Shown here: piece after piece, positions 17,894-48,700 of the stretch
Position numbering within the stretch: position 1 is the stretch's first letter
Layout of the letters: each line of letters starts with the position of its first letter
Notes under the pieces: model-generated
Database searches by the model: none
What the model was told of the DNA's origin: nothing
The model's input: only the letters and a program-made list of their open reading frames with translations
Translations under genes and position numbers: made by a program
From: Macrostomum lignano
Taxonomy: Eukaryota
Reading direction: 5' to 3'
DNA: 64,000 nt
Assembly: GCA_002269645.1 (NCBI GenBank)
Contig: NIVC01000094.1
Coordinates: forward strand, 124,001 to 188,000

Positions 17894-18392
17894 ATTGTGG
17901 CTGCTAAAAATTCAAAAGTTGAACTGTTATGTACTTTACATACTATGACTTGTAGGTTCAGTAAAAGGGTTTGTAACTACTTATAGTAACGTACTACATG
18001 TAGAAATGGAATTTTTAGTTACATAAATTGTTACATTCTGAAAACATTTAGTTTAAGCGGATAAGCCTCTTTGTTCACTTTGGTGAGGAAGCGACACCCA
18101 GTCTGTCGCGTCCTACTTTCTTCTACACAGTTAACCTGCTCTTGTTTAGAAAACTTGGGATCTGACTTTTGGTGTTACAGTTTTCCTTTAAGTCTTGTCT
18201 ATATCTGCCCGTGCACGGTATCATTTTGGCCGCAAGAATACAACTGCTACCAACTCAAACTGCTACCAAACTCAAACTGCTACTTACTTACTTGACTTAG
18301 CTGCAGGGCGGTCCGAAGACGCAGCGGGGAGGCGAGCGTCGCCCATTCCGCTAATCCCTGAAAGACCCGCATAGGCTAGGGCGCGGGGCCGG

Positions 18393-23629: not shown

Positions 23630-23877
23630 AGCTGAAAAGCGGGGGAGGGCTACTCGTTATGCGAGTTGAGTACCCGACTGGCCGACACCTCAAGCCAGCC
23701 GGTTTGAAAAAAGGACCGCTAGCGACCGGACTACTCCCCGGCCTTCCAGCCCATCGGCACGGTCAAACACCTTAGGCATTAGAGGGTACGTTAAGCAGTA
23801 CCACGGCCTGCAGGCTGGTGAGCCAGACCCGCATACCCAAATTCGGCCGAAGCCACTGGATAGGGTCGCCAGCGCCG

Positions 23878-24115
23878 GAGCCCAGTCTGTCCAGCAGCCC
23901 TAGGGTCTGCCTTGAACACACGCGGGGACGAGTACCCCTGGGTCGACTTGCGAGACAGCGTGGGGGAGTCTGCGGCTGCCAGAGGCAAATAGAGGGTGCA
24001 GACCTCCCACCAGCCTTGACCTGCTGAAGATGGGGGCAGGCGTGAAGCATCGCAGACCTTAGCTCGTAGGCCTAGTCTGTCTCATACTTCACTGGCTGAA
24101 TACGCCTTCGCGTGC
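23878..24115 (-). ncRNA. HDV-like self-cleaving ribozyme at the 5' end of element copy 1
   Basis: P1 GCACGCG/CGCGUGU (G1.U wobble), P2 CCCAG/CUGGG, P3 GGG/CCC, L3 UACUCGU, P1.1 AC/GU, P4 GGCAG...CUGCU, J4/2 CAGA (catalytic C at 23889). All elements occur in the canonical order. Confidence 0.85.
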
Positions 24116-25448
24116 AACTCAAACTGCTACCAATTCAAACTGCTACCAAATAAAGCAGAACCCTAAACTCGAATATTTTTATAATTCATCATGAGAATCA
24201 AGTGTATAGGCTGGGGTCTCCAACCTGCCTCGGTAAAAGAAGATCCGATCCGGTTGTTTTCATCCACAAGTTTCCTTCATCGATAAGCTAGATCTGTGCT
24301 AAACGAGTGGATTGCCGTTCATTGTAGAGATTTGCAACGGATCCCGAGTTTGCAACTCTCAGTAGGTTAATTTGTTCTCTGAATTTTCTTGACAGACTTC
24401 AGGGATTCTAACAACCCAAATCATAAAAGGCAGACAGCTGACGGTCCATCTGTGGCTATAGCCAGCCCACTTTGGGAGATCGGCATGTTGACAGAAGATG
24501 CATCTTCCCGAATGCGTACGAGCCGTACATTCTAATAAGTATTTTTTGTCTTTTTTCTTTACTATTTTTAGGATTTTTAGGACAAAACGATTCAGCTCTT
24601 ATTTTGGTAGTTCAGTTTTAGATTATATCTTGTACGGACATGTGGGTCAACCTGTCTAGATCGATGGTTTATGGCCCTCTTATCAGTCTTATGGAAGCCG
24701 TCAACGCTCTATGAGCTAATCGGAGCTTGAAAAATAGCTACTTTCTATATATAGAAATATTAATCATAGCTTTCCTATGAATTCTTTTTAATTTTCGTCG
24801 ACTCTGCGCGAGGCACATTATCCTGAAGCTATTTTTTGACTGCACCTGTCAAGTTATTTAGTGTCTGGCATGTTTTAGGTATCCAGATCGGCCAGTCAGA
24901 GTCATACTAGGCTTGTTCGATTAGAAAAAATCGCTTTAAGTACAAAGCAATCAGTTCAAACCGAAAAATCGACGCTTGGTATAACAAAACGACTCGAAAC
25001 CTCGACTCAAACACAGCAATTTTGAGAGACGACCAATACACATGGATTTTAAATATACATTTTGTACATTTTAAATTTCAAATAAAAAACTGCATCCTTG
25101 AATCTCTGGATTGTTTTGCGGTGCTCAAGTGCAGGCCGGACTATAAGCGCTTTAAGTGTTTCAATGAAATTTTAACAACAGAAAGCAGTTGCAAATAAAT
25201 AATAACAGCTGACACAAGCAGTATGTATTTTGGTATTTTTAAGCGTTTAGGCGTGTAAGAAATGTTAAATTACTGTTAAGTTTGGCAATTTTCAATAATG
25301 CGTATACATAAGAGGTACCAAAAGTTTTCCAGCCATTTCATGGGTTGAGCGGTTGCACGCCTTGACCAAGAAGTACTGCATAGGATCTTGGTCATTTTGA
25401 ATTTATTTTTAGCCAAATATCATTTTAAGGATATTAGGATAAAACTGC

Positions 25449-28400
25449 TCAAGTGCTAGTGCCACTTTTTACTGCCAACTTCCGGGCCGAGTGGTCGTAC
25501 ATCTTAATCAAATTCACGAATACCTGGTCCAGCGACATCTGGTAGAGAGCCCAGTAGCTCACCCCCATACGGCTCTGGTTGGCCGCCAACCATTTCAGTG
25601 CGGGTGACAGGCTCCGCACCGCGGGCTTGGGTACCGAAAACCGCATGACAAAACCCAGGCCGAGGTCCTCCTGTGTATGCGCTCCTTTGAACTGCTCTAC
25701 AACTGCGTTCTTGATGGATAGCCTCTTCTGTCTGACTGCCGACTCGCCATCCGGAGCCAGCAGCAGCTCCAAGGTGTACGCGTCTCCGTGACTGCAAGGA
25801 AAGTACAAAAGTTATATAAGGATAAAAATACCGTTACGTATAATAGGCTGGAGTTGATCTGTTGACAGTACTGGTAGCTACGAAGAATAAAAACGACCAG
25901 GATGTGAACAGTGCATCAACATGCACGCCTGACAGTCATTATGAGTCATGCTATTTATAGATATGGCATGCTGCGGTGTGGCGACTGCTGGTTAAATTCG
26001 ATGTAGGAGGAATCTACTCGAAGAACTGTAACCTTCTCTTGACTAAAAGCTCAGGGCTAACCAAATTTCTGGGGCCTACTGGTTAAGTACGCTCGTAGTT
26101 CTTTGGTAGCGGGTTAAGGTCTGGCGCTAAGGTTCCTGAGATCGATTCTGTGCCTGGTCTTAATCTGCGGCGCCTCTTGGCCTTTTTAGAGCGATTCTTA
26201 CCCATTAGGACCGACCCCAGGGCACAGACTGCGTACATGCTTGAAGACAACGGAATCAAGACCACTGTACACCCTGCGTGAGCGCGTGCCTACGTACGAA
26301 ATCTAATAATGCGTGTGCAAGCTCAGGCGTCGCATTTGGGGCGAAGTACGTATCCGTCGCTTTTATTTGCGACAAGACAATGCCTGTTGGAGTGCTTGCT
26401 CTCAACAGATTGTTTTTCTCAGGTTCAAATTTGACTTAATAAGCATTTGGATTCAATTTGAACGATGGGCAGCACCTGATGATTTTTAGTTATTTGGCTG
26501 TAAAGACTAAATTAGGGTTTGGGTTTTTACATGGTGTCCTCAGAAGAGCGTACTGTCATATGGGATGCGATGATGCAGCGAGGCTGCATTGGCTGTCAAA
26601 GTTGACTGAAATAGCTCATATTCAGTATAGACCTGCCTGAATACACACTGCTCACGAGCTGGAGACAATGCAGACTGCTCAATAAAGCCCAATTCGCACT
26701 GCCATCAAGTCAAACGACCGATGTAAAAAGGAACGAAAGTTGAAGTACAAGTAATTTGGTTTAATTTGATGGCACTGTGAACGAGCCATAATTCACAACA
26801 CAAAAATATTTCATCCTGCTAATTAATAGGCTCACCGACTCTGCAGCTGCTGCACGGTGCCCACTGAAATCATGCGGCCTTTGTTCATGATGCCGACCCG
26901 ACTGCACAGGGCTTCGACCTCCTCCATACTGTGGGTCGTAACTATGACCGACCTCTGCTGATGCACCATGCGGCGGATGGCACCCCAGATGAAGCGCTTG
27001 TTCTCGGGATCAACGCCGGTCGAAGCCTCGTCAATAACGATAAGTGCCGGGTTGCCGAGCATGGCGATGGCGAGGCAGAGACGCCGCTTGTTGCCGCCCG
27101 AAAGCTGACCGGCTTGCTTGTCGCAGTGCTGCGCCAGGCCCAGGCTCTGCATCAGACAGATCGTCTGTCACTCCGCTTCGATCGTATCAAGTCCGCGGAT
27201 GGCCGCGTAAAAGCGAATGTGCTCGGCGACGGTGATGCTGTTGAAAAGTGGATTGTGCTGAGGGCAGTAGCCGATGGCGCCGATTGTGGCTCCCTCCCGA
27301 CCGGAAACCCAGGCACCGTCATGCACGCGGACCTCACAAACGCCCTCCGTCGCAGCCTCCTCGCCGACAATGACCGACATGGAGGTGGACTTACCGGCTC
27401 CGTTGGCGCCCAGCAGACCGAAGATCTCGCCGGCCATCGTTCCGAAGGTGATGCCTCGCACAGCGTGGACTCCGTTTGCGTGAATCTTTTGTAGCTTCCG
27501 TACTTCCAGCACGTTCTTGGAGTTCCTGGGAGCCGCCAGCACCCTCTCCGTCTCTTTGCGAGCGCCTTCTTCCATGTCGCTTTCGGGTTTGTTAGGCATG
27601 GTCTGGGAGCCGCCGTGGCAAAGGATCTCTTTGACAACTTCTTTTTTCTCAACGAAGAAAATAATGCCGCTCAGAATGATAATGTGCACTGGCATTGCTA
27701 TCAAACAGTTGAGTATCTCCTGTTGCTTCCACAGACTTTCAGCCATACCAGGCAGTTCGGAACCGTCAACTGTTTGATAATACTCAGCCTTGAAGAAATA
27801 GTACAACATGCAGTGAAACACAAGGCCAGTAGGGGCTGCAGGCGGAACTGTCCAAATCAGCACGTTAAAAATATAAGCGGGGAAGTAAGTTAGTAATGCG
27901 AAGGCTGCAGGCAATAACACTCCGACCAACACGCAAACCGTTGAGACAAGGGTGTTGTGAGTCTTTATAAAAACAGCGATGGCGTACATTGTCAGCAGGT
28001 TGGACACAAGTCCAAAGAAAAACAATGGTAGAAGTGCAGCAAGAATAAGATACGCGCGCCTGTATGCCTCTGTAACCATTAACAGCCCGATGGCTAATGC
28101 GTAGAAAATCGCATACTGGACCCAGTGCATCAAAAATGTGTTGATCCAATAGGCTAGATGCGTCATGCCAGTGGACAAGAGGTAGCCGCGCACCCTGCTG
28201 CATATGTCCTCAACTGGATCGCTCAAATATGAGATTGGGAGCAATGGGATCACTAATAAAAACACTATTAACGGCCAGCCGGTTCTGGCAAGTCTCGTCT
28301 CCCTACTATTTATTACAGCGAGAGCCGTAGTGTTTTCGTATCCTGCCATTCCAAAAAAATTCAGCATTGCGACTAGCGCTCTTCTGTGAATATGCACTTT

Positions 28401-31400
28401 GGATTGGGAGATATCTTTTCCAAAGAAAACACCAATGCTTACGGACCGGCCCTTGTTTGACACATTCTTTTGCCAGGAAGAGGCGTAGTACAAAACGCAC
28501 GGAGTATACCATTTTTTATTATCATCTATAAATCTATAGTTCCATAGCATATAGTACACATGATCATGAAAAATTTTATCAGACATAAGTTCCTCTATCC
28601 CCAAAAATGGAGGCTTTTCTATAACAATGGGCGGAAGAGGCTCGTCTTTTTTAGTTGCATCTCGAAGAGCAAGCCTCTTGCAGTCATCCACTGAGATGTA
28701 ATTCGCGGCCCCATCAGAGATGCACACAATTGGTATTGCCTGTATACCAAAGTCTTCCACTCTAAACAACATCGGCTTGACCAGAATATCCATCTGCATC
28801 AATTCGAGCTTGCTTTCTTTAACTTTTTTAAACCCGGTTTTAGACGTAGCGGTGCTAACAGCCATCAGTGTGAGCAAGGCGGCCGGAACCAGGAACCTGC
28901 TTGCTAGATTAGCCTTTACCCGCACTTGTCGCTTGATATTGATCTTGAACAGAGCGGCAAACTGACCTGTAACGAAGGTTCTCATTTTGGTTGAGCTTGT
29001 CATCAGTTGATCAGATGCTTCCTTCACCTCGGGAGTCTCAACCGGAACACTAAGGATTTCGGTACGCTGAGGGAGCAGCAGCGTTCCTGCGCGAAAGGCT
29101 TTGATGATATCTTCCGAGTCCATCCCACCAAGCCTCATGAACACGTCGTCAAGAGATGCCTGCGATAAGCCAAACGTTTCTACCTCTCCGCTCGTCTCCA
29201 GAATTTGAACTGCTTCTGTCAACACAGCCGAGTCCATAGCAGGAACCTCAAGCTGGAGCTCCGTATCGATGTGACTCTTCACTCGGATCTGTTTCAGCTT
29301 GGTCAGTAGTGGCTGCACTCCAGTCTTGGACTTCAGTGACACGTTCAGTGTAAAGCTGCAGCCAAACGCTCGCTTTAAAAACATCGAAGACCCCGCGCAC
29401 ACGATCTTGCCGCCGCACAAAAAGATTTTGCGGTCTGCAAGAATGTCCGCCTCATCCATGAATTGAGTGCACAGAATAATGGAGCGGCAGCTCTTCTCCT
29501 CCTGTAGCAGCTGCCACAGCTGTCGCCTCGACACCGGGTCCAGACCGCTGGTGGGTTCGTCAAGAAACACAACATCCGGGTCGCCCAACAGAGCCAAGAT
29601 CGTGCTCACCTTCCTCTTTTGCCCGCCACTCAGGTCGGACAAACGCACATTCTCCTTGTCTTCCAAGCCGAGTCTCTGGAGCATACTCCGAGCTTTCTCC
29701 AGCTCGCTTTTACTGGCCAATCTGCTGAGCATAGTGACTCGGATGCAGTCCATTACGGTGAGCGCGTCGCAAAGGTCGTCGAACTGAGGGCAGAGACTAA
29801 TCCGTCCTCTAAGCGATAGACGGAGCAGCGGGTTCGTCACTAGACAGCCGCCGATATAGGCCGTTCCCTCGTCTGGCAGCTCATCGCCTGTGAGGATCTT
29901 GACGAGGGTTGACTTGCCTGCGCCGTTGTGTCCGATGAGAGCCGTGATCTGGCCTCGGTAAATCTTGCCTGCAGTTGTTGAAAGGAGATGAATGATTGTC
30001 GAGTTCCATTATTAATTTCTTACTAGCATCACAATAGCACTCTAGATAGGCCAGCAAATAAATGCTCGAACAAGCGCCGATCGAATAATTTATTGCACCA
30101 TTACACTTCCCCTGAGCAGAAAAAAACATTTTGATCTCTGCCTTTCCGGGCGCCGAATATCTCACTGGCTATAATGATCTGCTGAGCAATGGTTTTCTGA
30201 TGCTCTTCTACTTTTCAGCGCCTTGCGTTTTCTCTCCCTCTATTTACTTTTTTGTACATCGTAGGTACGGCTTCATTGCTAAAAACGCCCAGATCTTCTA
30301 AATCCCTAGACCTCTTTTTTCCTCATATGTTTGAACGGAATTTTTCAGGAATAAAATATCTGTACTAGTATTGTCTTACTTTAGTATGTTGATAGTAACC
30401 TTCATTCAATCAATTTTATACAAAAAATGAAAACTAATGTCAATTCACACCATGTAAAAAGTTGTCTTATTGTCGTTTAATCGAATCTAAATATACTAAA
30501 TCTCTAAGGTTTGTATGCTTGTATTTACTAATGTGAAGCAAGGCGTTTGCATTCACGTTAATTCACTTACACGATAGCTTCTTCAGCACGGCGGGCACGT
30601 CAGAGCAGCAAAAGCACAAACTTCTGTAGGTCTTTGTGATGTCATTGACAGCGATAATTGGTGACAGCCCCATCACCGGCTCGATGTGGGGCTCTGCCTT
30701 CTCCGCCGTAACTTGACCCGCACCCTGAGCAGTGTCGTTCTCATCCTTCTTGCCTCGCTGGCTCCAGAAGGCGGGCATGAACGGGTATTGCGGCGGCAGA
30801 CAAAGACCGTTTCCGCTGCTCAGGATGAAGTCCAGGTAAGTCAGCAGCAAGAATAGCAGCAGTAGCCCGATAACCGTCCAGTTTTGGATTTGAGAAAGCC
30901 GCCCGGAGTCGTCTTCTTGTTTAATTTCGGAGAATTGACGTCTGACTTCCGAACTGAGCAGCTTGGTGATGTATTCAGTGGCGAACAGTGGGGAGAAAAT
31001 GTACAATAGGAATTTATACTTCTCTTGGGGTGGTGGCTTGATGAACTCTGTCACCAGCAAGCCGATGCTTATGACAGTAGCCAGTATTGACAAACCAATC
31101 GTTGACGGCATCAGCAGCTCCAGAAGCAGCAAGACGGCAGCAAAGTTGAGGCAAAACAATGTAAAGAAGACGAAGAGTCGAGCCATGGCTGAAGCTGGAA
31201 AAACACCGGGGCACTGCAGTGCGTTCGATGCCGTGAACACACCGGCGAACAGGAGGCACTCAACCAGAGTGATGAGCCAAATAACCAGCCAGTAAACGGA
31301 CACCGACAGGCCGCTCCGAAACAGTCGCTGCAGGAAGCCACCGGTCTTTAGCGCCCGGACGCAGGTTATGGTAGAGATGAGCATATAGAAGGTCACTCCA

Positions 31401-32224
31401 CCTGCTGCTAAACTGACTGTGAATCGCACAGTTGCGTGTATCAAACGTATAAAAGAATTCTTTTTAATGTACTTTGCACAAATTGACTGCGGCAATGATA
31501 TTGACGCCGCAATATTCCGTTTTTTAATATTGTTGCGCTCAGTTGGTTTACGAGTCGGTTTCAGAGAAGGGTCTTTGTAAAACACTTCGAACTGTTGCAC
31601 ATCAGCAAATCTGTCGAGTCCAAGCCTTTTCTGCGTTGAAAGTATCAAAACTTTGTACAAAAATGCGCATCTGATGTCCCGGAATAACGTAGAGGTGGGC
31701 ATAAAAATTTTACCTAAGCATTCCAACACCGTCCTAGATTTTTCGGGAGTTTTGGAGTAGCGTATCAGCGCTACGATGGCTGGATTGGTCCGATGGATAT
31801 TAAACCGCTCTCTGCAGTCCGTCTCTGGCCCGCAGTCCTCAATCCAGTCGGCATTTCCACCTGCCGCAGTCATGAAGCTGGTTGCGGCAGCCGCCTCAGC
31901 CGGGAAGGCTGACCGGTCAACCAGAACTTTGGATTTCGACGCCGCAAAGTCGGAGGCGGTGTATAGGATGACTGTTTTGTTAGCATTTATTTCATCCAAT
32001 GAAGAACTGACGTCCCCTTTAAGGGAAACAGCCGCTATTGGCAGGACATAAAGGTTGGACATCATTAGTGCAATGGGCACAACAATCACGAGGAGGCGCC
32101 AAGCCTTGAGCTTCAGCAGCAGCAGGAGCAGCAGTACGAACTGCTCGAAGAACCCGCCGGCGCTCAGGTTCTGCTCCGGCTTGGGCACGGCTGACGGCTG
32201 CTTCTTGCTTGGGTCGAGCGGCAT
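25449..32224 (-). CDS. ABCA: Full-size ABCA-subfamily transporter; exons 32224-30571, 29968-26836, 25791-25449 (1710 codons) with an in-frame TGA at 27168-27170
   Basis: TMD-NBD-TMD-NBD layout; GHNGAGKST/LSGGQKRK/FLDEPTSG and GANGAGKST/LSGGNKRR/VIDEASTG; GT-AG introns are phase-consistent. May be a recent pseudogene allele. Confidence 0.88.
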
Positions 32225-33714: not shown

Positions 33715-36700
33715 CTGCACTCCGAAGAACCGTGAACGATTAGTAACGAGCTACATTATTGTATAAATATCACTGTTAAATCTACCATACTTGTTCCATC
33801 CCAACCAGTAAACTTCAAACCATCTACTTCCCCACACCTGTTTTCCCTCACATTTATTCCTGTCACATCCGTTCCCCTCACACCTGTTCCCCTCACACCT
33901 GTTCCCCTCACACCTGTTCCCCTCACACCTGTTCCCCTCACACCTGTTCCCTTCACACCTGTTCCCCTCACACCTGTTCCCCTCACACCTGTTCCCCTCA
34001 CACCTGTTCCCCTCACACCTGTTCCCCTCACACCTGTTCCCCTCACACCTGTTCCCCTCACACCTGTTCCCCTCACACCTGTTCCCCTCACACCTGTTCC
34101 CCTCACACCTGTTCCCCTCACACCTGTTCCCCTCACACCTGTTCCCCTCACACCTGTTCCCCTCACACCTGTTCCCCTCACACCTGTTCCCCTCACACCG
34201 GTTCCCCTCACACCTGTTCCCCTCACACCGGTTCCCCTCACACCGGTTCCCCTCACACCGGTTCCCCTCACACCGGTTCCCCTCACACCGGTTCCCCTCA
34301 CACCGGTTTCCCTCACACCGGTTCCCCTCACACCTGTTCCCCTCACACCTATTCCCCTCAGCAGACAATACAAAAAGATAAAACTTCAGCAGACCAGGAG
34401 AGCTTCTTGTGCCGCAAAGGGTTCGTCATGTAGCCAAGTATTCCCGGACGGTCTGGCGGCCAGTCTCGTTGCCATGGCAACCCAGTCCCGATGCCGTTGC
34501 CGATCGGTCTGAGAAAGTCCGCTTCGTCCCCATCAGCAGACGGCTCGTCCAGGTGGCCGCTGCCGGCCTGTTGAATCGACTGCAGGCCGTCCAGCTGCAC
34601 TTGTTGCGGGTCACTCGAGGACATCAGGCTGAGAGCCTGGTTCAGGCGCTGGCTCAGGTGGGTTACGTGCCGCTCCAGGCGTCGGACACGATGCTCGAGC
34701 GCTCTAGTTGAAATGAATGAATTGGGTTTTTAACTCGTAATTCAAATCTGCTGAGTTGCCAGAATTATTAATGATAAAAGCTTTCTGCAGATTCTATGGT
34801 ATTTTCTATTGTACATGTACTTTCCTTCAGACGCAATGAAGTTTAATTTAGGCCATTATTCCACACTTTTGGAACTTTCCATAGACAAAAGAGTCAATCA
34901 GTATATTTTAACCAATAAGCAACGGATGCAAATACGAGAACTCGTATAACTGAAAAGATATCAGGGCCTCACGGCTAGTAGTCTATGGCCAAAACTGTGT
35001 CAAACAAGAAAAACATGTACTACACCTTTTCACGTTCATTTTTTATCAAAGTCTAGTTCTAATAAAACTAGCGGAAATTCAATTCAGATAATTCAGACTT
35101 GGGCAACAAACCCCCGTTCAAAACATTATGCAACCGAAGCAAGTTTTAGCCATAGACAAAAATTGTCCCCAGTCTGAATCGTCTGAATTGAATTTCCGCT
35201 AGTTTTTTTACAACTGGACTTTGTTCAAAATTGAACGTGAAAAGGTGTAAAAGCTGCATTCATCCTTGAATTAAATAAACGTGAACACACATCCAGAACA
35301 GGAGCAATCAAATGTCACTGTCTATCAACGTTACTGCAGATGTCAAAGACGCCTATTACTTACCCCCAAAATTAAATGTACAGTTTTCAAAGCGGCAATT
35401 TTCGAAAATACGGGACACTTGTGCCTGGGCGTTGCACGCGAAGGCGTATTCAGCATGCCAGTGAAGTATGAGACAGACTAGGCCCATGGGCTAAGGTCTG
35501 CGATGCTTCACGCCTGCCCCTATCTTCAGCAGGTCAAGGCTGGTGGGAGGTCTGCACCCTCTATTTGCCTCTGGCAGCCGCAGACCCCCCCCCACGCTGT
35601 CTCGCAAGTCGACCCAGGGTACTCGTCCCCGCGTGTGTTCAAGGCAGTCCCTAGGGCTGCTGGACAGACTGGGCTCCGGCGCTGGCGACCCTATCCAGTG
35701 GCTTCGGCCGAATTTGGGTATGCGGGTCTGGCTCGCCAACCTGCAGGCCGTGGTACTGCTCAACGTACTCTCTAATGCCTAAGGTGTTGACCGTGCCGAT
35801 GGGCTGGAAGGCCGGGGAGTAGTCCGGTCGCAAGCGGTCCCCCTCCTGGTGTCGGGCCAGCCTTGAGGGTGTTATTGGCCTACTGCCCGGTCAGGTGGAG
35901 CGGCCGGGTGGGTACCGCGCCCCTTTGAGGGTAGCCCACCAACCTTTTATCATGGCCTTCGAGCCGACTATGGATAAACAAGCTATTTCTAGGGACGGGG
36001 ACCCTTCTAAACCCCAACCTCAGTCCGAAGGACCGGCCGGCCCTGCTGGCAGATCCCAACCGACTGATTCAACTGTGGCAAAGGAAGGACCGGCTGGCTC
36101 TGCTGGCAGATCCGACCAGAGCTACCAAACTCAAAATACCCTAAGACCTGCCAGCTCCGCTGGTGGATCTAAGGGAACCGCGAGCTCTGAGCCTAAAGGA
36201 CCGGCCAAATCTGGCAGATCCGATGAAGCTCAGCGGGCTCGGCTTGAGCGCAAACGCGCTAAACAACGCGCCAAAAGGCAGGCCAAGAAGGGAGCTGCGG
36301 GGGCCAAAGCGGCGGCGTCCACCATGGATGCTGAAGCGACTGGAGTCCCAAGGCAACCAGGCGGGCCGGCCGGTGGAAGCTCCAGTAGTTCAGCGGCGGC
36401 GCTCCCTGGAGCTGCTGCCGCGGCTGCTGAGGCCGAAACCACGGCGCAACAAATGGCCACTGCCAACAAGGAGGTTCCTTCGGGAGCTACCTTTGCGGCG
36501 AAGGCCAAGGCCAAAATCCCGGGAGTGATCATCCAAGGTCGCGACCAGGACTGGACCACTGATCAGCTTCAAAAAGTGTGGAGTGCTGTTGACTCCTATC
36601 TGATTGAGCTGACTGTCGAGGAGGGAATCTCCATCGGCGTTGAGCGGATGGTGCTGCGAAGCACATTCGTTCTTATTGCTCCTAGCAGCGAGGAGGACGC

Positions 36701-39700
36701 TCGGCGGCTGCTCCAGCGGCTACCGACGGTCTCCTTGGATGCTGACCTTGGCGGAGCTCTTTTTCTTCGCGAGGGCCAGCGTCCAAAGACGATACCCTAT
36801 GTGGTTTTCGTCCCTGCTAAGAGCACCGCAGCTGGACCAGACGTTATTCGCCGGGTCCTACTGCGTCTGAACCCCGACCTCCCTGCTAGTGGACTGGTGT
36901 ATCACCGTAAAGTCCGCAGGGGGGAGACGGGCAACTCAATTGTCCTCGGCCTTTCCAGCACTTGGGCGAGTCGGTACCCTAATGGATCCTCTTTCCAGCT
37001 GGGTGCCCTCAAGCTCAAGTTGCGCCGAGGAAAGTCTGCCAAAGGGAAGGCTTCTGCCAACCCCGGCATCTCCGGCAAGAGCGGGGCGCAGTCTAAGGCC
37101 CAAGGAAAGGCGCAAGCCGATCCCAAAGCCAAAGCTGCATCTCGCCCCTCTGCTAGCAGCAGTTCGGCGACCGCGGTAACGGCTCCGGCCGAGCCCCGGG
37201 AACCAAACCTGCCAGTCGGAGAAGGAGTTGAGGACGAGGCCGGGTCTTCGGAATCCGAGCTCTCCTCGGCCACCTTGGTGGGGTCTGAAGGTAAAGATGC
37301 AGGTGAGGAAGCTTCCTCCATCCTGTCATCGGAGCCTGAGGACTCTGCTGGGGGGGCCGGTGGGGGTGAGGAGGCCATGGACGTCGACCAACTCCCATCT
37401 CCCAGTCAAGCCCCAGCGGCCTGGGACGAGGACGATCTGTTGTCCAAGTCTCCTTGATGGCCTGGGCTCTAGCCAGATATTGCATTTAATACAGTATGAC
37501 TAAGCTCCACGCTGCCAAAGGAGCGACATTCTGTCTGCAAATAAATTTACAGCATTGCGTATCTGCGTCAGTAAATCTGATGAAGATTGCTGAGCTGTAC
37601 AGGCCAGGCCTCATCCTGATCCAGGAACCCTGGATGCGCAACGGTAAGTTGCCCAACATTCCCTCTGGCTACTCTGATTTTTATGTGTGTGGCCCGGGGA
37701 ACAGCCGCCCTAGAGCGGCTATCCTCGCTGCTAGCCATCTCCAGGCTTGGCTGAGGACTGATCTCTCTGATGGAGACCTTTGCGTCATCCAATCTAATCA
37801 TTTCTCTCCGCGTACGTGTCTTGTTGCCTCGGTTTATATCCCAGGCGACAGAGACCCTGCTCCCGAGAGTTTACTGCGCCTTGCGCAGTACTGCGAGTCC
37901 CAGAACGCTGAGCTGTGCTTAGGGGGCGACCTCAACGCGCACCACAAGCACTGGGGCAGCAAAGATACCAACACTAGAGGAGAGGAGCTTCTGGCCCTCA
38001 TCTCTAACACAAACCTCATGCTCTGCAACCGCGGCAGCACTCCTACCTTTAATAATGGCAGATGGACCGAGGTCCTCGACGCCACACTCGCCACCCCAAG
38101 ACTCTTTGACAGAGTCAAGGAGTGGAGAGTCTGGTCTGAGGAGCCCTCCCTGTCTGACCACTGCTTTATCGCCTTTAATATCGCGGACACTAAAACCCAG
38201 TCTCCGATCACTTGGAGACGCAATATCCGCAACACTGATTGGGCGGCCTACAAGGCTGCCCTTGATCTGCACCTGCAGGAACTCACGGACTTACGTCCGA
38301 TTGAGACCTGCGAGGATGTGGATCATATGGCTGAGACGCTGACAGGTTGCATTATTGCAGCCTACGAAGCGGCTTGTCCTGCTCGCGCCTACAGAGGCAA
38401 GACCTCGGCGCCGTGGTGGAACCCGGAGCTGGGGAAACTCAGGCGGAAGGCCAAAAGCCTTCATCGCCGTGCCATGAAGACCGGAAACCCGGAGGACATG
38501 GAGCTTTTCCGGCAAGCCTCCCGCAATTTCAAATCTGAAGTGCGCAAGGCCAAGGAATGTAAGTGGCGCCAATTCTGCAATGAATTGGATCAAGACAGAC
38601 CTACTTCTAGGCTTGTCAAGGCCCTTACAATGGACAAAATGTCCAAATTAGCCATGATCAAAAAAGATGATGGCTCTCTTACTAAAGACCCTGAAGAAGT
38701 GCTTCAGCATATGCTTAGCACATTCTTCCCGAGGGTACCTACTGCTAGACCGGAGCCCAACCATTCGATGGATGGAGCCACCCTAGCGGCGGGCATTGTC
38801 ACTGAAGACCTAATCGCTCGTGCGGTCAGAACCTTCAAACCCTTCAAATCTCCTGGACCTGATGGTATCTACCCTGTTCTCCTTCGTGAAGCAGCCAAGA
38901 TACCCTCGTTCCTGAGACTCACCCGCAATCTTATGCGGGCCTCTATCCAGCTGGGATACGTTCCCAAAAGCTGGACTGAAGCTCGAGTAGTCTTTATTCC
39001 CAAACCTGGGAAGGGTGACTACCAAAGCGTCAAGGCCTTCCGGCCAATTAGCTTAACGTCAGCAATGCTTAAGCTCACTGAGAGGCTTATTCTCTGGCGG
39101 CTGCTCTCCTGCGAGCTGACAGCGATGCCCCTCAGCAATAATCAGCACGCCTTCCGTACCGGGAGGTCGACTGACAGCGCCCTGCATGCGATTGTCGAAA
39201 AGATTGAACGGGCGGTACTGGGTGACGGTTACGCCCTGGCTCTCTTTCTTGACATTGTTGGCGCCTTCGACAACGTTATCTTTGAAGCGTTTCAGAGGGC
39301 CCTTCAAAATCGCAAAGCTCATGCTACCCTCATACGGTGGATCATGTACATGATCTCCAACCGTACGGTCACTGCCCAACTTCTTGGGCAAACTGCCTCC
39401 ACCAGAGTCTGTAAGGGTGGACCCCAAGGCGGAGTCCTCACCCCGACGCTCTGGAACCTGGTCATGGACGCTCTTCTGAGTGACTCCCGACCTGACCCCG
39501 TCTTCAAAGTCGGGTATGCTGATGACGTCACGGCCATTGTGGCAGGACCGTCTCCCAGCACGCTCAGGGATCTGATGCAGAGCTTTATCCGCAAAGCAGA
39601 ATCCTGGGCCAATGACAATGGTTTGGAACTCTCTGAGCCCAAAACCGTTGCCATTATGTTTACCAGCAGACTACGCTGGAACATACGTCCTCTGCAGCTC

Positions 39701-42700
39701 TACGGCAGAGATATTGCCTTCGCGCACCAGACCAGATGTCTCGGGGTCACACTTGACCACCGGCTCAACTGGTCCTTCCACGTGAAAGCAAAAGCTAAGC
39801 GTGCCTCAGCCATCCTGGCCCAGCTCCGACGAGCACTTGGCACTTCTTGGGGTCTATCCCCAAAGCGGCTTTGGTGGATCTATACTTCCGTAGTTAGACC
39901 TGCCATTACGTACGCCTCTGTTGTCTGGGTTAGCGCTACCCAGGTCAAAAGCCATGCAGACCTGCTCAACACGATCCAAGGCAGAGCGTGTAGGCTCATC
40001 TGCAACGCCACCAGGTCCACGCCCTTTGCTGGCATGGGGGCCTTTCTTAATCTTCCGCCTCTTGACCTCTTCATCAGGGGTGAGGCGGCTAGAACGACGC
40101 GGCGTCTAATTGATGCCGGCGTCAAATTCATTTACATGAGAGCACCTGCTAAGCGGAACCTTGTCCCGCATAGCGATCTGTGCCTCAACTTTCTCAACGA
40201 GTGTCAGGCCAATCGCGTCTTCACCGATGGCATTGCCTCAACGCTCAACCTGAGACAGCGCTACTCCGTAGCTATCGACTCGCGCGATAACATCAATGAC
40301 CATTGGAACCCTGGTGAGCTTCATTGCTACACCGACGGTTCTAAGCAGTCAGCCAACACCGGCTTTGGTGTTGGAATCTTTCTGAACGGGAGGGTCATCG
40401 CTACCCACGCTCAATACACTGGGGTCAACTCCAGTGTTTTCCAAAATGAAGTTCTGGCCATCAGCTCCTGCACTGCAGAGCTTCTCGCCACTGGCGTTAC
40501 TGGTAAGAACATCATTTTCCATTCGGACAGCCAAGCTGCCTTGCACGCCATCAGTGGCTGCAGCACCAACTCTGCTACAGTCCTTGACTGTATCAAACTC
40601 CTCAACATGTTGGGTTCCGCCAACAAAATTACCCTTAAGTGGGTTCCGGGGCATGTGGGGATCCGAGGAAATGAGTTGGCTGACACCCTTGCAAAAGTTG
40701 GTGCCTCCGGCTCCTCTCTCGGCCCCGAACCTCTTGTCCCGATTCCTGGCTGTGTCATCGACTCGCGCATCAAAGCGTGGATCAGGACTCAGCACCGCTC
40801 GACTTGGGCGAACCGCACGAACTGCAGGCAATCCAGAGGCGCTGTCCCTCAGCCCTCTCACCAGCTCCGGAAGCTCCTCTTGCGCCTCTCGCGCAGAGAC
40901 ATCCGGGCTGCCACCATGACCCTCTCTGGTCACGGCTGCTTCTCCAGGCACCAGTACCTGCAGGGCAACGCCACCAACGCCACCTGTAGTTTCTGCAACT
41001 CAGGTGACGAAACCGCTGAGCATTTCGTCAGCATCTGTCCCGCCTTCACGCGGGCCAGACTCACTTACCTCGGGCCACACACATCTATTACTGAAGCGTG
41101 CAAACCCGAAAACTTTAATCAGCTCATGCGCTACCTTCGGGCCACCCGCAGGGCTGAACTCTCCTTTCCAGAGAGCACCATAGCTGCTGGCGACACTGGG
41201 GGACCTCCCTGGGCGGCGCCAACCCTCCGTCCATAGCGACGCGTCGGCCGTTCAGGGACTAGCGGAATGGGCGCCCGCGCCTTCCCGCTGTGTCCCCTCC
41301 GGGACAGCCCTGCAGCTAAGTCAAGTAAGTCAAGTGCCTGGGCGTTCATCACTGCAATAATTTAAAGCGAAACTGTTTTTACCGTTGACTTTGGCAGTGA
41401 CTGAATTTCTACACCATCCATTCTCGAACTCAGGTCCATGTCGTCGCCCGCCACCTCCGGAAGTTCCGGCAGTTCATCAGTGCCATGATCGTTCTCAAGC
41501 CACTTAATGAAATCACTCAGGGCCTGGTCATCGTGATGTTCTCCATGCATGCTTATCTCCGACAAAAGTTGCAGCTCGTCCATCTTGACACCATTGAGCG
41601 AGTCGACCGGAAGATTTTTCCAATTGATAAGCGCAGGCATTTTGAAGCTACAAAAACGCGTCCCTTAATATGTCAAGAGTGATAAGAAATGGACATCAAT
41701 ATTGCAAGTTTTCTGTCTATGGTCCAAGTAACCTCTGCAGACAACATAGCGAGCAACGTTTAGTCTATGGTCAAGAGAAAAGTGTGGAATAATGGCCGCA
41801 AAAGTGTGGAATAATGACTGCGCGCTGAGTGAAAGTATAAATACAATGCACTTGTGTACACCATTTTACCCTCGCTTTTGAACAAACTCCGTTTCACTTT
41901 AGACAGCCGGAACTTCAGTTTAGACACTTTTAGACTGGAGCCCCGAATCTACATTCACTATCGACAAACTCCGTTTCAGTATCGACAGCTAAGCTTTGTG
42001 GTGCTACACTTCTATCTATTTACATAGGCAAGTAAGGAAACGCACATCCAGATCTAGGCGAAACTCCCTTTCACTTTCGACAAACGCCACTTCTCCTTAA
42101 ACAGTCTATGGTCTAAGCTGCTGAAACTCCGTTTCACTTTAGTCAACCAACATTCAAGATAGACAAGATACATTCACTTTAGACATGAACTCACACGGGA
42201 GGTGTGCAAAGGTTTATTAAGCATGTTCATGGAAATTTCCAAGGATTAAAACTTTCATTGTAACGGAAGATGGCGTGCAACGAGGATTTTTTATCAATAA
42301 ACAGTTAGTTTGGCGGCCTAGTTTAAAAGGCATTTGAGAATGCAGGACTGTTCCAAAATATTTTTGTTTAACAGCGTCGTGATTAAAACGGCAAAGCCAG
42401 CAGAAGCGAAGCGATAGTTCAGCGATGGGTTCTGATTTCCATTAGCCATCAATTGGCTGAGACACCAAGCACCGTGGCAGATACCTGAAGCAATGGCTGA
42501 GCCACCGTGCCACCTTCTCTGGAGTGATGCAGTCGGCAGTGCCGTCCACCTCACGAGCTGCTGCTCGCTCGGCCTGATGAAGGAATCTTGAATCGCCGAC
42601 AGTCGACGCTTCAGAGCCGCCTTCCAGCATGATATCGCGTTCTCAACTGGGTGAGAAATGGACTGTAGGGTGGCAGTCGTCTCACTTCCACAGCGTCTTC

Positions 42701-45700: not shown

Positions 45701-48700
45701 TAGCTGGATGGCGGGGCTGATAGCTGGATGGCGGGGCTGATGGCTGGATGGTGGGGCTGATAGCTGGATGGTGGGGCTGATGGCTGGATGGTGGGGCTGA
45801 TGGCTGGATGGTGGGGATGATGGCTGGATGGTGGGGCTGATAGCTGGATGGCGGGGCTGATGGCTGGATGGTGGGGCTGATGGCTGGATGGCGGGAGACA
45901 CTTGGGCTGATAGCTGGATGGCGGGGCTGATGGCTGGATGGTGGGGCTGATAGCTGGATGGCGGACTTGGGCTGATAGCTGGATGGCGGGGCTGCTAGCT
46001 GGATGGCGGGGCTGATGGCTGGATGGCGGGGCTGATAGCTGGATGGTGGGGCTGATGGCTGGATGGTGGGGCTGATAGCTGGATGGCGGGGCTGATAGCT
46101 GGATGGTGGGGCTGATGGCTGGATGGTGGGGCTGATAGCTGGATGGCGGGGCTGATAGCTGGATGGCGGGGCTGATAGCTGGATGGCGGGGCTGATAGCT
46201 GGATGGCGGGGCTGATGGCTGGATGGTGGGGCTGATAGCTGGATGGTGGGGCTGATAGCTGGATGGTGGGGCTGATGGCTGGATGGTGGGGATGATGGCT
46301 GGATGGTGGGGCTGATAGCTGGATGGCGGGGCTGATGGCTGGATGGTGGGGCTGATGGCTGGATGGCGGGAGACACTTGGGCTGATAGCTGGATGGCGGG
46401 GCTGATGGCTGGATGGCGGGGCTGATAGCTGGATGGCGGGGCTGATAGCTGGATGGCGGGGCTGATAGCTGGATGGCGGGGCTGATAGCTGGATGGCGGG
46501 GCTGATAGCTGGATGGCGGGGCTGATGGCTGGATGGTGGGGCTGATAGCTGGATGGTGGAGCTGATGGCTGGATGGCGGGGCTGATAGCTGGATGGCGGG
46601 GCTGCTAGCTGGATGGTGGGGCTGATAGCTGGATGGCGGGGCTGATGCTGGATGGCGGGGCTGATAGCTGGATGGCGGGGCTGATAGCTGGATGGCGGGG
46701 CTGATAGCTGGATGGCGGGGCTGATAGCTGGATGGCGGGGCTGATAGCTGGATGGCGGGAGACACTTGGGCTGATGGCTGGATGGTGGGGCTGATAGCTG
46801 GATGGTGGGGCTGATAGCTGGATGGTGGGGCTGATGGCTGGATGGTGGGGCTGATGGTTGAAAAATCTACTTGGAATTAAGGAGAAAATGGAATTAAAGA
46901 GGCCACTTACGCGTCCGAGGGTCCCTCCTCCGGCTGCTGGTGTCCCATCTCGTCTTTGTGCGGCTTCAGCGGCGCCGGCGTCTCAAAGCCGGGAGGCGGC
47001 GGCGGGGTCTTCGGCTTTTCCGACTGCAAGCGGGGAAAATCAGCATTTTTCTACTAAGAGTAGTGAAACAAAATACGGAAATCAATTTTTTGCTAATAGC
47101 AAACTAATCAAGTGCTATTCACCTGTTCGGGCTTCACCCTCAGTGGCGGAACGGCATGCTTGGCCAGGCCTTCCAGTTTTCCATTAGTCACCTGCAGGCA
47201 GGTGAATGTACGCTTGCAAACTTAATTCAACTGTTTTTAACAGATTCAGAGGCTTAGCTAGTAGATAAAATTTAATTTAACTTAATTTTAATAGAAAAGA
47301 ACAAATGAAAATGCTACTGCAAACAACAACCACTCAGGTAAAATGAACAACAGGTAGCTTTCTGTATGAAGCAATAAACTGCAGCTGCTGTTAGGAGCAG
47401 CAACTAGTTCAAATGTATTTGCTCACTAAATTATACCGCAATACGTGTACGACACAGTGGGGCAAGCAAACGGATGCACAAATCAAGCGCAGAAAGAAGA
47501 GGCAATGGGAAAAGCATTCAATTTAGCAGGCAAAGCTATATGAAAAATGATTCTGCATATTAATTGCACTACGAGACGCAATGCAGAAGTAAAAATCAGT
47601 CAAAAGCAGAGAAAACAGTTATGAAATTCAGTGCTGATCGGTGCACTTCAGAGCTCAAGTCATCCTAATTTGGGCAGCGACGGCAGCTCAGTCGACCTCC
47701 TCGACGGTGGGTCCGCCCGCTCGTCCCGCTCGCTGCGGACCCTGCGGAGGCGGCTGCTGCTGCTGATGCAGCTTGGCCATGAGAGGCGAGCACAGGCTGC
47801 TCAGCTGCCGCTGCTGTTCGGCGATCTCGTCCTTGTCGGCCGTCTGGTTGTTCTCCAGCCAGGAGATGACGCGGTCGCAAGCGGCGGTCACCTCGCCGGC
47901 CTCCTTCTCGCCCAGCCGGTCCTTGCAGTCGTTGGCCGCCTGCTTGTACTGGAAGGCGAGCGATTCCAGCTGGTTGCGGGCCGCCAGGCGCTCGCGGTGC
48001 CGCTCGTCCTCCTCGCGGAACTTCTCCGCGTCCCGCACCATCCGCTCGATCTCGTCCTTCGACAGGCGACCCTTGTCGTTCGTGATTGTGATCTTCTCCT
48101 CCTTGCTGGTGCTCTTGTCCTTCGCCGACACCACCAGGATTCCGTTGGCGTCTACGTCGAAGGTCACCTCGATCTGCGGGACTCCGCGCGGCGCTGGCGG
48201 GATGCCGTCCAGGTTGAACCGGCCCAGCAGGTGGTTGTCCCTGGTCAGCGCCCGCTCGCCCTCAAACACCTGCACCGTGACGCCGCTCTGGTTGTCCGAG
48301 TACGTGGTGAACGTCTGCGTCGCCTTGGTCGGGATGCGGCTGTTCCTCTCCACGATCTTGGTCATCACGCCGCCGGCAGTCTCGATGCCCAGCGACAGCG
48401 GAGCCACGTCAAGCAGCAGCAGGTCTTCGATCTTCTCGTCCTTCACACCGGTCAGCACCGCCGCCTGCACCGCGGCTCCGTACGCGACCGCCTCGTCCGG
48501 GTTGATCGACTTGTTCAGCGTCCGGCCGCCCATGAACTCCTGCAGCAGCTTCTGCACCTTCGGGATCCTCGTCGATCCGCCGACCAGCACAATCTCGCTG
48601 ATGCTGCTCTTGTCCATCTTGGCGTCCCTCAGCGCTCGCTCCACCGGCTCCATCGTCTGACGGAAGAGGTCAGCGCACAGCTCCTCGAACCGAGCCCTGG

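Follow-up and report, generated by a model that had tools for sequence, protein, structure and literature searches.

A predicted HDV-like self-cleaving ribozyme with a large conserved J1/2 domain at the 5' end of LINE retrotransposons in the flatworm Macrostomum lignano

The first 235 nt of the RNA of the flatworm LINE retrotransposons described here probably form a nested double-pseudoknot, HDV-like self-cleaving ribozyme with a large structured J1/2 domain between P1 and P2, in which a cut directly 5' of base G1 would free the element RNA from the transcript upstream of it. In the 64-kb window (the whole stretch of Macrostomum lignano DNA that was analysed), the anatomy of such a ribozyme is present at the start of the element, the anatomy is conserved in relatives with compensatory changes, and G1 is the boundary of the insertion. 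That a ribozyme should have its scissile site at the first base of the element is the central claim, and is well supported in silico.

The principle of a terminal HDV-like ribozyme has been established since 2010-2011, and such ribozymes are already known from R2, R4, Dong, Baggins, RTE and L1Tc. Those of R4, Dong, Baggins and L1Tc cut at the element's 5' end, and that of R2 at or near it (PMC3774820; PMC6765202). For flatworm LINEs, the papers found describe twister variants in Schistosoma (PMC8501958) and a predicted planarian R2 ribozyme (PMC3774820); in full-text searches, no paper was found that links Macrostomum to ribozymes or describes Macrostomum LINEs.

Two LINE insertions and their ends

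Copy 1, on the minus strand, is flanked by a target site duplication (TSD) of about 28-32 bp that differs by one mismatch and one indel, and the first base after it is G1. Taken by itself this end is ambiguous by 1 nt, since a G also follows the 3' copy of the TSD, and it is copy 2 that resolves it: this second insertion, found on the plus strand by comparing the window with itself, starts directly after a perfect 13-bp TSD with the G of GCACGCG (Table 1). The initial annotation had proposed that both insertions begin exactly at the predicted scissile site, and this is borne out, G1 being the first base after the TSD in each. Both elements have intact ORFs and CTAAGTCAAG(TAAG)-type 3' tails with no poly(A), that of copy 1 being CTAAGTCAAG(TAAG)n.

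In both copies ORF2 matches the Pfam families Exo_endo_phos_2, RVT_1 and RNase_H; ORF1 showed neither a Pfam domain nor a zinc knuckle. An APE-RT-RNase H architecture is common to I, R1, Tad1, ingi and other clades besides LOA, and since several clades carry it, the domain set of ORF2 does not single out the LOA group, to which the elements had initially been assigned. A Macrostomum lignano entry in UniRef matches part of ORF2 at 100% identity, and numerous other matches are to the same species, which marks the window as flatworm and not insect DNA; the named ORF2 homologues are all uncharacterised animal proteins. Exact-protein look-ups of ORF2 from both copies and of ORF1 from copy 1 returned no record.

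Table 1. Positions of the two insertions, their predicted ribozymes and the neighbouring gene in the window. For copy 1 (minus strand), element position p corresponds to window position 24116-p.
Feature	Window position (strand)	Element positions	Remarks
Copy 1, whole element	24115 to about 18281 (-)		From TSD, ORFs and window self-comparison
Copy 1, 5' TSD copy	24116-24147 (-)		Within 16-bp tandem repeat GGTAGCAGTTTGAGTT
Copy 1, 3' TSD copy	18252-18280		
Copy 1, P1 5' strand GCACGCG	24115-24109 (-)	1-7	Pairs 7/7 with 23918-23924
Copy 1, J1/2 peripheral domain	24108-23943 (-)		166 nt
Copy 1, P2 5' strand CCCAG	23942-23938 (-)	174-178	Pairs with 23881-23885
Copy 1, P3 GGG	23937-23935 (-)	179-181	3 bp with P3'
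Copy 1, L3 UACUCGU	23934-23928 (-)	182-188	7 nt; positions 2-3 (AC) in P1.1
Copy 1, P3' CCC	23927-23925 (-)	189-191	
Copy 1, P1' CGCGUGU	23924-23918 (-)	192-198	Directly 3' of P3'
Copy 1, J1/4 GU	23917-23916 (-)	199-200	Complementary to L3 A183-C184, giving a 2-bp P1.1
Copy 1, P4 hairpin	23915-23890 (-)	201-226	From RNA fold
Copy 1, J4/2 CAGA	23889-23886 (-)	227-230	Proposed catalytic C at 23889
Copy 1, P2' CUGGG	23885-23881 (-)	231-235	3' end of the ribozyme
Copy 1, rest of 5' UTR to ORF1 ATG	23630-23880 (-)		Conserved in relatives (leader alignment)
Copy 1, ORF1	23629-22100 (-)		509 aa
Copy 1, ORF2	22097-18393 (-)		1234 aa, APE-RT-RNase H
ABCA-like gene, last exon	25449-25808 (-)		Same strand as copy 1
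Copy 2, whole element	35434-41333 (+)		Different lineage from copy 1
Copy 2, TSD	35421-35433 and 41334-41346		Perfect 13 bp, GTGCCTGGGCGTT
Copy 2, ribozyme	35434-35673 (+)		
Copy 2, P1	35434-35440 (+)		GCACGCG, pairs 7 bp with CGCGUGU, G.U at base
Copy 2, J1/2	35441-35612 (+)		
Copy 2, P2 CCCA	35613-35616 (+)		
Copy 2, P3/L3/P3'	35617-35629 (+)		
Copy 2, P1'	35630-35636 (+)		
Copy 2, J1/4	35637-35638 (+)		
Copy 2, P4	35639-35664 (+)		
Copy 2, J4/2 and P2'	J4/2 from 35665; P2' to 35673 (+)		
Copy 2, ORF1	ends at 37457 (+)		
Copy 2, ORF2	37496-41236 (+)		1246 aa

Anatomy of the predicted ribozyme

Read 5' to 3' on the minus strand from 24115, copy 1 begins GCACGCGAAGG, and segment-by-segment location places all the parts of an HDV-like ribozyme, in canonical order and size, within the 235 nt that end at 23881. 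The pair at the base of P1 is a G.U (G1.U198), G1 is predicted to lie just 3' of the scissile bond, and the two strands of P1 are 184 nt apart. The list of segments drawn up in the initial annotation was recovered part by part on the minus strand, in the place and order it gave, and the catalytic cytosine that it named is indeed the J4/2 C at 23889. The completeness claimed there holds for copy 1. The core of copy 2 has lost a single nucleotide at the P2/P3 boundary (GGGG to GGG), so that either P2 is reduced to 4 bp and J4/2 has 5 nt, or P3 is reduced to 2 bp.

How far such an arrangement could arise by chance was gauged with a descriptor, written after the candidate had been seen, that asked for a P3 of 3 bp, an L3 matching U...CG., one or more pairs in P1.1, a P2 of 5 bp, a C three bases ahead of P2' and, no more than 400 nt away, a P1 of 7 bp whose first base is G. 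A single site in the window satisfies it, and the P1 of that site is at 24115; copy 2 does not pass the strict form because of its 1-nt deletion. Dinucleotide shuffles gave 0.71 matches per 64 kb to the core alone and 0.043 to the full descriptor, and shuffles of the element itself 0.0045 full matches. Heptamers able to pair fully with P1' of copy 1 occur in the window at a frequency of 3.1e-4, and three of them lie on the sense strand of the element, including the one at position 1. By itself the core is thus unremarkable; what is remarkable is that P1 is formed by the first seven nucleotides of the element.

A covariance-model search for HDV-like ribozymes, offered as a check in the initial annotation, gave no Rfam match at gathering score across the whole window, and at E<=10 neither the 1-kb sequence, the 101-nt core nor the metagenomic relative L002 (described below) matched an HDV-like family (those of interest being HDV ribozyme, CPEB3, drz-Agam-1, drz-Agam-2-2 and F. 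prausnitzii), the only matches being chance ones to miRNA, snoRNA and lncRNA models. Such non-detection is expected, since the models cannot score pseudoknots or bridge a J1/2 of 166 nt; it is a failed test all the same.

Conservation of the leader in relatives

Two further leaders were reached through protein matches, giving a comparison set of four sequences from three independent lineages: copies 1 and 2; L001, a contig from Logan with an ORF2 that shares 60% identity with that of copy 1 and 57% with that of copy 2; and L002, a contig from a JGI metagenome that is truncated before P1 and has an ORF1 sharing 56% identity with that of copy 1. The four leaders align over their length, with the ribozyme part of copy 1 being 58% identical to that of L001 and 74.5% to that of L002. 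The corresponding segments are set out in Table 2.

Table 2. Sequences of the ribozyme segments in the compared leaders.
Segment	Copy 1	Copy 2	L001	L002
P1/P1'	GCACGCG/CGCGUGU (7 bp)	GCACGCG/CGCGUGU (7 bp)	GCCUGC/GCAGGC (6 bp, G-C)	not seen/CGCGAGC
P2/P2'	CCCAG/CUGGG		CUCAGA/UCUGAG	CCCAAA/UUUGGG
P3 (invariant in four sequences)	GGG/CCC		GGG/CCC	GGG/CCC
L3	UACUCGU		UCUCCGU	UUCUCGU
J1/4	GU		AG	GU
J4/2	CAGA	CAGA	CUGC	CGUG

Positions U1, C5, G6 and U7 of L3 are invariant in the four sequences, as is the C of J4/2; the rest of J4/2 varies, and L001 and L002 have no A at the position where one is usually constrained (PMC3774820). Both pairs of P1.1 are altered on both sides in L001 and still pair (L3 CU with J1/4 AG), L002 keeps one pair only (UC with GU), and P4 of L002 is a perfect 8-bp hairpin. 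Base 1 of L001 starts a P1 of its own (GCCUGC), different from that of the copies and paired with its own P1' (GCAGGC); this contig start is consistent with the assembly having broken at a repeat boundary located at G1. Two 5' ends defined by TSDs and one contig start coincide with G1.

Pair counts were taken from a structure-guided alignment of the four sequences; because this was adjusted manually to the structure, the counts are inflated. In it, 97.1% of 103 cells are standard pairs and 11 of the 31 pairs show compensatory changes on both sides (P1, P2 and P1.1 two each, P4 five), the two in P1 deriving from the comparison of copy 1 with L001. None of 500 shuffles reached any of the observed pairing measures, and in a control where the 3' partners were slid by 1-3 columns pairing stood at 25-47%, with at most one compensatory pair. 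The central part of the initial interpretation, a ribozyme whose predicted scissile site is the first base, stands on compensatory changes in P1, P2, P1.1 and P4 and on coinciding ends; its view of the two insertions as a single family is contradicted by their proteins, as set out below.

Searches for more distant leaders were less productive. Two AT-rich contigs with ~33% ORF2 identity (L123 and L124) have unrelated 5' regions, in which a relaxed descriptor finds no HDV-like motif. Protein searches with ORF1, run both with a single sequence and with a four-sequence profile, returned only P0077, which is L002. A scan of metagenomes with the pattern GCAAGYCGN{4,10}GGGTNNYCGTCCC gave 120 matches, mostly in prokaryote-like contigs, which are put down to chance because the pattern is too degenerate; none of them proved homologous to the four leaders by BLAST. 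One further protein relative, P0002, was recorded at 57% identity.

Folding of the J1/2 domain

In an RNAalifold consensus of copy 1, copy 2 and L001, J1/2 is predicted to be a closed domain of 48 pairs, eight of them with compensatory changes, in which three hairpins sit inside a stem formed by element positions 10-14 with 155-159. When copy 1 was constrained to form P1, P3 and P4, with the strands of P2 and P1.1 left free, the predicted energy was -86.3 kcal/mol against -92.6 kcal/mol for the minimum free energy (MFE) fold, the P2 duplex being worth about -6.7; for copy 2, under constraint to P1, P3 and P4, the values were -95.1 and -98.2 kcal/mol. The ribozyme-compatible nested fold is thus predicted to be energetically competitive even with P2 and P1.1 left uncounted. 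The unconstrained MFE fold of copy 2 already has P1 and P3, and in that of copy 1 positions 5-13 pair with 159-166, a pairing that competes with P1.

Stable J1/2 domains are known to draw P1 and P2 together and to raise the rate of cleavage by as much as three orders of magnitude (PMC4908430), and the active ribozymes of silkmoth R2 have J1/2 loops of 216-498 nt, with a distance from P1 to P1' that can exceed 700 nt (PMC3774820). A closed, conserved, multi-hairpin J1/2 agrees with what is known of such large natural HDV-like ribozymes.

Comparison with known ribozymes

The closest point of reference for the individual parts is drz-Agam-2-1 from Anopheles gambiae, which cleaves within seconds and for which both sequence and bracket structure are available (PMC4908430 Table S1). 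It has a G1, a 7-bp P1, a J1/2 hairpin, a P2 abutting a 3-bp P3 (ACG/CGU), an L3 of UCCACGU, a P1' directly after P3', a J1/4 of GG, P4, a J4/2 of CUAA and P2' (PMC4908430). Copy 1 shares this order of parts, with G at +1, a P1 of the same length, a structured J1/2 and a P2 that likewise abuts a 3-bp P3. Its 7-nt L3 has the same U1, C3, C5, G6 and U7 (UACUCGU against UCCACGU), its P1' again follows P3' directly, the 2-nt J1/4 is complementary to L3 positions 2-3, a P4 follows, and the 4-nt J4/2 has the form C..A (CAGA against CUAA). The differences lie in J1/2, where a single P1.2 hairpin contrasts with 166 nt and three hairpins in copy 1; in P2, which has 7 bp and an extension in the mosquito ribozyme and 5 bp here; and in the pair at the cleavage site, G-C there and G.U here, with one P1.1 pair an A-U and P4 short in copy 1. 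Cleavage has been measured for the mosquito ribozyme, whereas copy 1 is a flatworm LINE with an RNase H domain whose ribozyme is predicted from sequence.

Among retrotransposons, R2 (with R4 and Dong), and silkmoth R2 especially, resembles these elements in carrying, at the 5' end of a non-LTR element, an HDV-like ribozyme that processes the co-transcript (PMC3774820), and silkmoth R2 in addition shares a very long J1/2 and a sequence that, apart from the catalytic C and some positions in L3, is little conserved (PMC3774820). R2, however, inserts site-specifically into 28S rDNA, encodes a restriction-like endonuclease, has only one ORF and depends on Pol I for co-transcription, whereas the flatworm elements encode an APE endonuclease, have two ORFs and are inserted at dispersed sites between TSDs; many R2 ribozymes cleave at -28 within the 28S sequence, whereas those described here would cleave exactly at the junction.

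Baggins1 (Drosophila, LOA clade), RTE and L1Tc (Trypanosoma cruzi, ingi clade) are likewise dispersed LINEs of the APE type, and their ribozymes cleave at the first nucleotide of the element, freeing it from read-through or polycistronic transcripts (PMC3774820; PMC6765202; PMC3383444). The hosts differ, and the ribozyme of L1Tc is compact (77 nt) and doubles as a promoter. Perere-3 of Schistosoma mansoni is also a flatworm LINE of the APE type with TSDs, and has a 5'-terminal self-cleaving ribozyme that processes its RNA (PMC8501958). That ribozyme is a twister variant whose substrate strand is regenerated from the TSD (PMC8501958), in contrast to the HDV-like double pseudoknot predicted here, where P1 lies wholly inside the element.

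Proposed mechanism and alternatives

In the mechanism we propose, the element would be transcribed from upstream DNA, a scheme with which the setting of copy 1 is compatible, as it lies on the same strand as an ABCA-like gene and ~1.3 kb downstream of its stop codon. The ribozyme would then fold, with the J1/2 domain placing the terminal strand of P1 beside the P2-P3 core, and the cytosine at the start of J4/2 (window 23889), together with Mg2+, would cut the backbone directly 5' of G1. Cleavage would release an RNA that has a 5'-OH, begins with the element's first base and is free of host sequence, and the uncapped, highly structured leader would probably support internal initiation on ORF1. 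Full-length target-primed reverse transcription would yield new copies that again begin at G1. Catalysis, co-transcription and the role in translation are what we infer; for the last of these, the conservation of the rest of the leader and the five upstream AUGs in the 5' UTR of copy 1 agree with internal initiation on an RNA lacking a cap, a route that has been proposed for R2 and L1Tc.

The same leader could be read differently: the HDV-like fold may be real and conserved and yet serve mainly in some role other than cleavage, with an internal promoter at G1 setting the 5' end and the pseudoknotted leader acting as an IRES-like element, a binding site for element proteins or a protective 5' structure. 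A promoter that starts transcription at G1 would likewise give identical 5' ends, conservation extends beyond the ribozyme over the whole leader and is in J1/2 well above what a simple connector needs, the 5' UTR has those upstream AUGs, and J4/2 past the C is not conserved in L001 and L002. There are precedents as well, L1Tc using the same 77 nt as promoter and ribozyme (PMC3383444), the R2 protein binding the ribozyme pseudoknot, and HDV-like ribozymes having been proposed as IRESs (PMC6765202). We nevertheless regard this reading as unlikely, for positions needed for catalysis, and not for folding alone, are kept (G at +1, the C of J4/2, and U1, C5 and G6 of L3), and P1 is formed by exactly the terminal 7 nt in copies 1 and 2 and the terminal 6 nt in L001, as ends defined by cleavage predict. 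Moreover, promoter and ribozyme roles are compatible and are combined in known elements such as L1Tc.

A second variant keeps self-cleavage and places P1, and with it the cut, inside the leader, with P1 at positions 154-158 (CACGC), which would leave a J1/2 of ~15 nt and render the match of the terminal heptamer secondary. This segment does pair over 5 bp with P1' in copy 1, as does the homologous CCUGC of L001 with its own P1'. Set against the terminal P1, with its 7 bp in copy 1 and 6 bp in L001 and its initial G, it offers only 5 bp and starts with C, it is the closing stem of the J1/2 domain in the consensus fold, and the aligned segment of L002 pairs over 3 bp only. The genomic full-length copies retain the first 153 nt, so the RNAs that were retrotransposed had not been cut there, and on these grounds the internal P1 was rejected as highly improbable. 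Chance resemblance in a GC-rich, highly structured 5' UTR might be argued from the frequency of core-only matches in shuffled sequence, the lack of any Rfam match and a descriptor made post hoc, and it is just as improbable given how rarely the full match is expected per window or per element, a P1 at the independently defined first base of three elements and 11 compensatory pairs where slid controls have at most one.

A possible exchange of leaders between lineages

Self-cleavage at G1 is thus the preferred reading of the ribozyme part, and the leader that carries it has a history of its own. The initial annotation treated the two insertions as one family, which the proteins contradict: ORF2 is 59% and ORF1 32% identical between them, so they belong to two lineages, and yet the ribozyme part is 97.5% identical. 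The first ~403 nt are nearly identical, followed by an abrupt break in identity. L001, whose ORF2 is equally distant, has a leader only 58% identical to that of copy 1 in the ribozyme part, which is what would be expected of parts inherited together and for this reason points to a recent exchange of the leader between the lineages of the two copies. It is conceivable, and we put it forward tentatively, that the ~403-nt ribozyme leader is a transferable cassette that has recently moved between deeply diverged, intact LINE lineages, and that its three-hairpin J1/2 may do more than join P1 and P2, for example by recruiting element proteins or the ribosome to an uncapped 5'-OH RNA.

Implications

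Terminal HDV-like ribozymes being an established theme, more interest attaches to two side results of this analysis, the large conserved J1/2 domain and the leader swap. With the former, the set of natural ribozymes would gain a member whose J1/2 is both large and conserved in evolution, useful for testing the 'pinch' model of activation by peripheral domains. The latter, a near-identical leader on lineages whose proteins are so far apart, suggests that ribozyme leaders are exchangeable among LINE lineages. As an annotation mark, the motif would indicate the true 5' ends of full-length, probably active elements. The finding would extend terminal HDV-like ribozymes to Macrostomum lignano, a free-living flatworm and genetically tractable model of regeneration.

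A leader common to two LINE lineages

Comparison of the 5' leaders of the two LINE copies in the window, copy 1 on the minus strand and copy 2 on the plus strand, suggests that two lineages have recently exchanged a 5' UTR: the leaders are almost the same, with 97.5% identity in the ribozyme part, identity is lost abruptly at approximately element position 403 (element position p in copy 1 being window position 24116-p), and the proteins encoded beyond have diverged, with only 32% identity in ORF1 and 59% in ORF2. Outside the window, an environmental contig, Ga0394873_0103931 (L002), in JGI metagenome 3300038379 holds a sequence closely related to the copy 1 lineage, with 56% identity in ORF1 and 74% in the leader, which places Macrostomum-like flatworm DNA in that sample. 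Two more distant ORF2 relatives (L123 and L124; 33% identity) belong to AT-rich genomes and have unrelated 5' regions, with no HDV-like motif detected in positions 1-720 of L123 or 1-1080 of L124; thus, either the wider clade does not generally carry the ribozyme leader, or these contigs lack the true 5' ends.

Coordinates of features in the window and in L001, a contig with a homologous leader
Feature	Coordinates	Strand	Remarks
Leader, copy 1	24115-23713	-	compared with copy 2
Leader, copy 2	35434-35840	+	compared with copy 1
J1/2 domain, copy 1	23943-24108	-	
J1/2 domain, copy 2	35441-35612	+	
J1/2 domain, L001	7-169		
P1-like segment, copy 1	23950-23962	-	element positions 154-166
Leader 3' of ribozyme, copy 1	23630-23880	-	
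3' tail, copy 1	18281-18300	-	
3' tail, copy 2	41316-41333	+	
3' tail, L001	5955-5965		
ABCA-like transporter gene	25449-32224	-	multi-exon; ABC signature motifs at 29633 and 27104
C-terminal exon of ABCA-like gene	25449-25808	-	
Hsp70-matching ORF	47688-49604	-	638 aa, intronless; full-length Hsp70 match, E 3e-256

Insertion sites and neighbouring genes

Copy 1 starts approximately 1.3 kb downstream of the ABCA-like gene and on the same strand, so that read-through from this gene could reach it; copy 2 has the opposite orientation and lies past the gene's 5' side. At both target sites GTT stands directly 5' of G1, the first base of the element (GAGTT|G, 24116-24118; GCGTT|G, 35431-35433), and in copy 2 it falls inside the target-site duplication (TSD) and is clearly target DNA. 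Across these two sites, the shared GTT may reflect a preference in top-strand nicking or an effect of microhomology. Copy 1 landed in a short array in which a 16-bp unit, GGTAGCAGTTTGAGTT, is repeated in tandem (24116-24150 and 18241-18280), leaving the length of its TSD ambiguous between 16 and 32 bp. In place of poly(A), the 3' ends of copy 1, copy 2 and L001 carry CTAAGTCAAG and then repeats of TAAG or TCAA, and there is 1-3 nt of microhomology between the element tail and the start of each TSD.

Conserved structure within and beyond the ribozyme

J1/2, the 166-nt insert between P1 and P2 of the ribozyme, forms a closed and conserved three-hairpin domain with eight compensatory pairs among copy 1, copy 2 and L001, a degree of conservation beyond what a simple linker would require. 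Within copy 1, CACGC at element positions 154-158 resembles the P1 strand and could form 5 bp with P1', and in the minimum free energy fold positions 5-13 pair with 159-166, in competition with P1; the segment spanning 154-166 could, on this modelling, be a folding switch or decoy.

Conservation across lineages also extends to the leader 3' of the ribozyme, where, for example, a CCGGGGAGTA.TCCGG block is invariant in copy 1, copy 2, L001 and L002. Taken together with five upstream ATGs in the copy 1 5' UTR (element positions 31, 66, 282, 337 and 362), this conservation suggests that translation of these elements may begin by a structured, non-scanning start.
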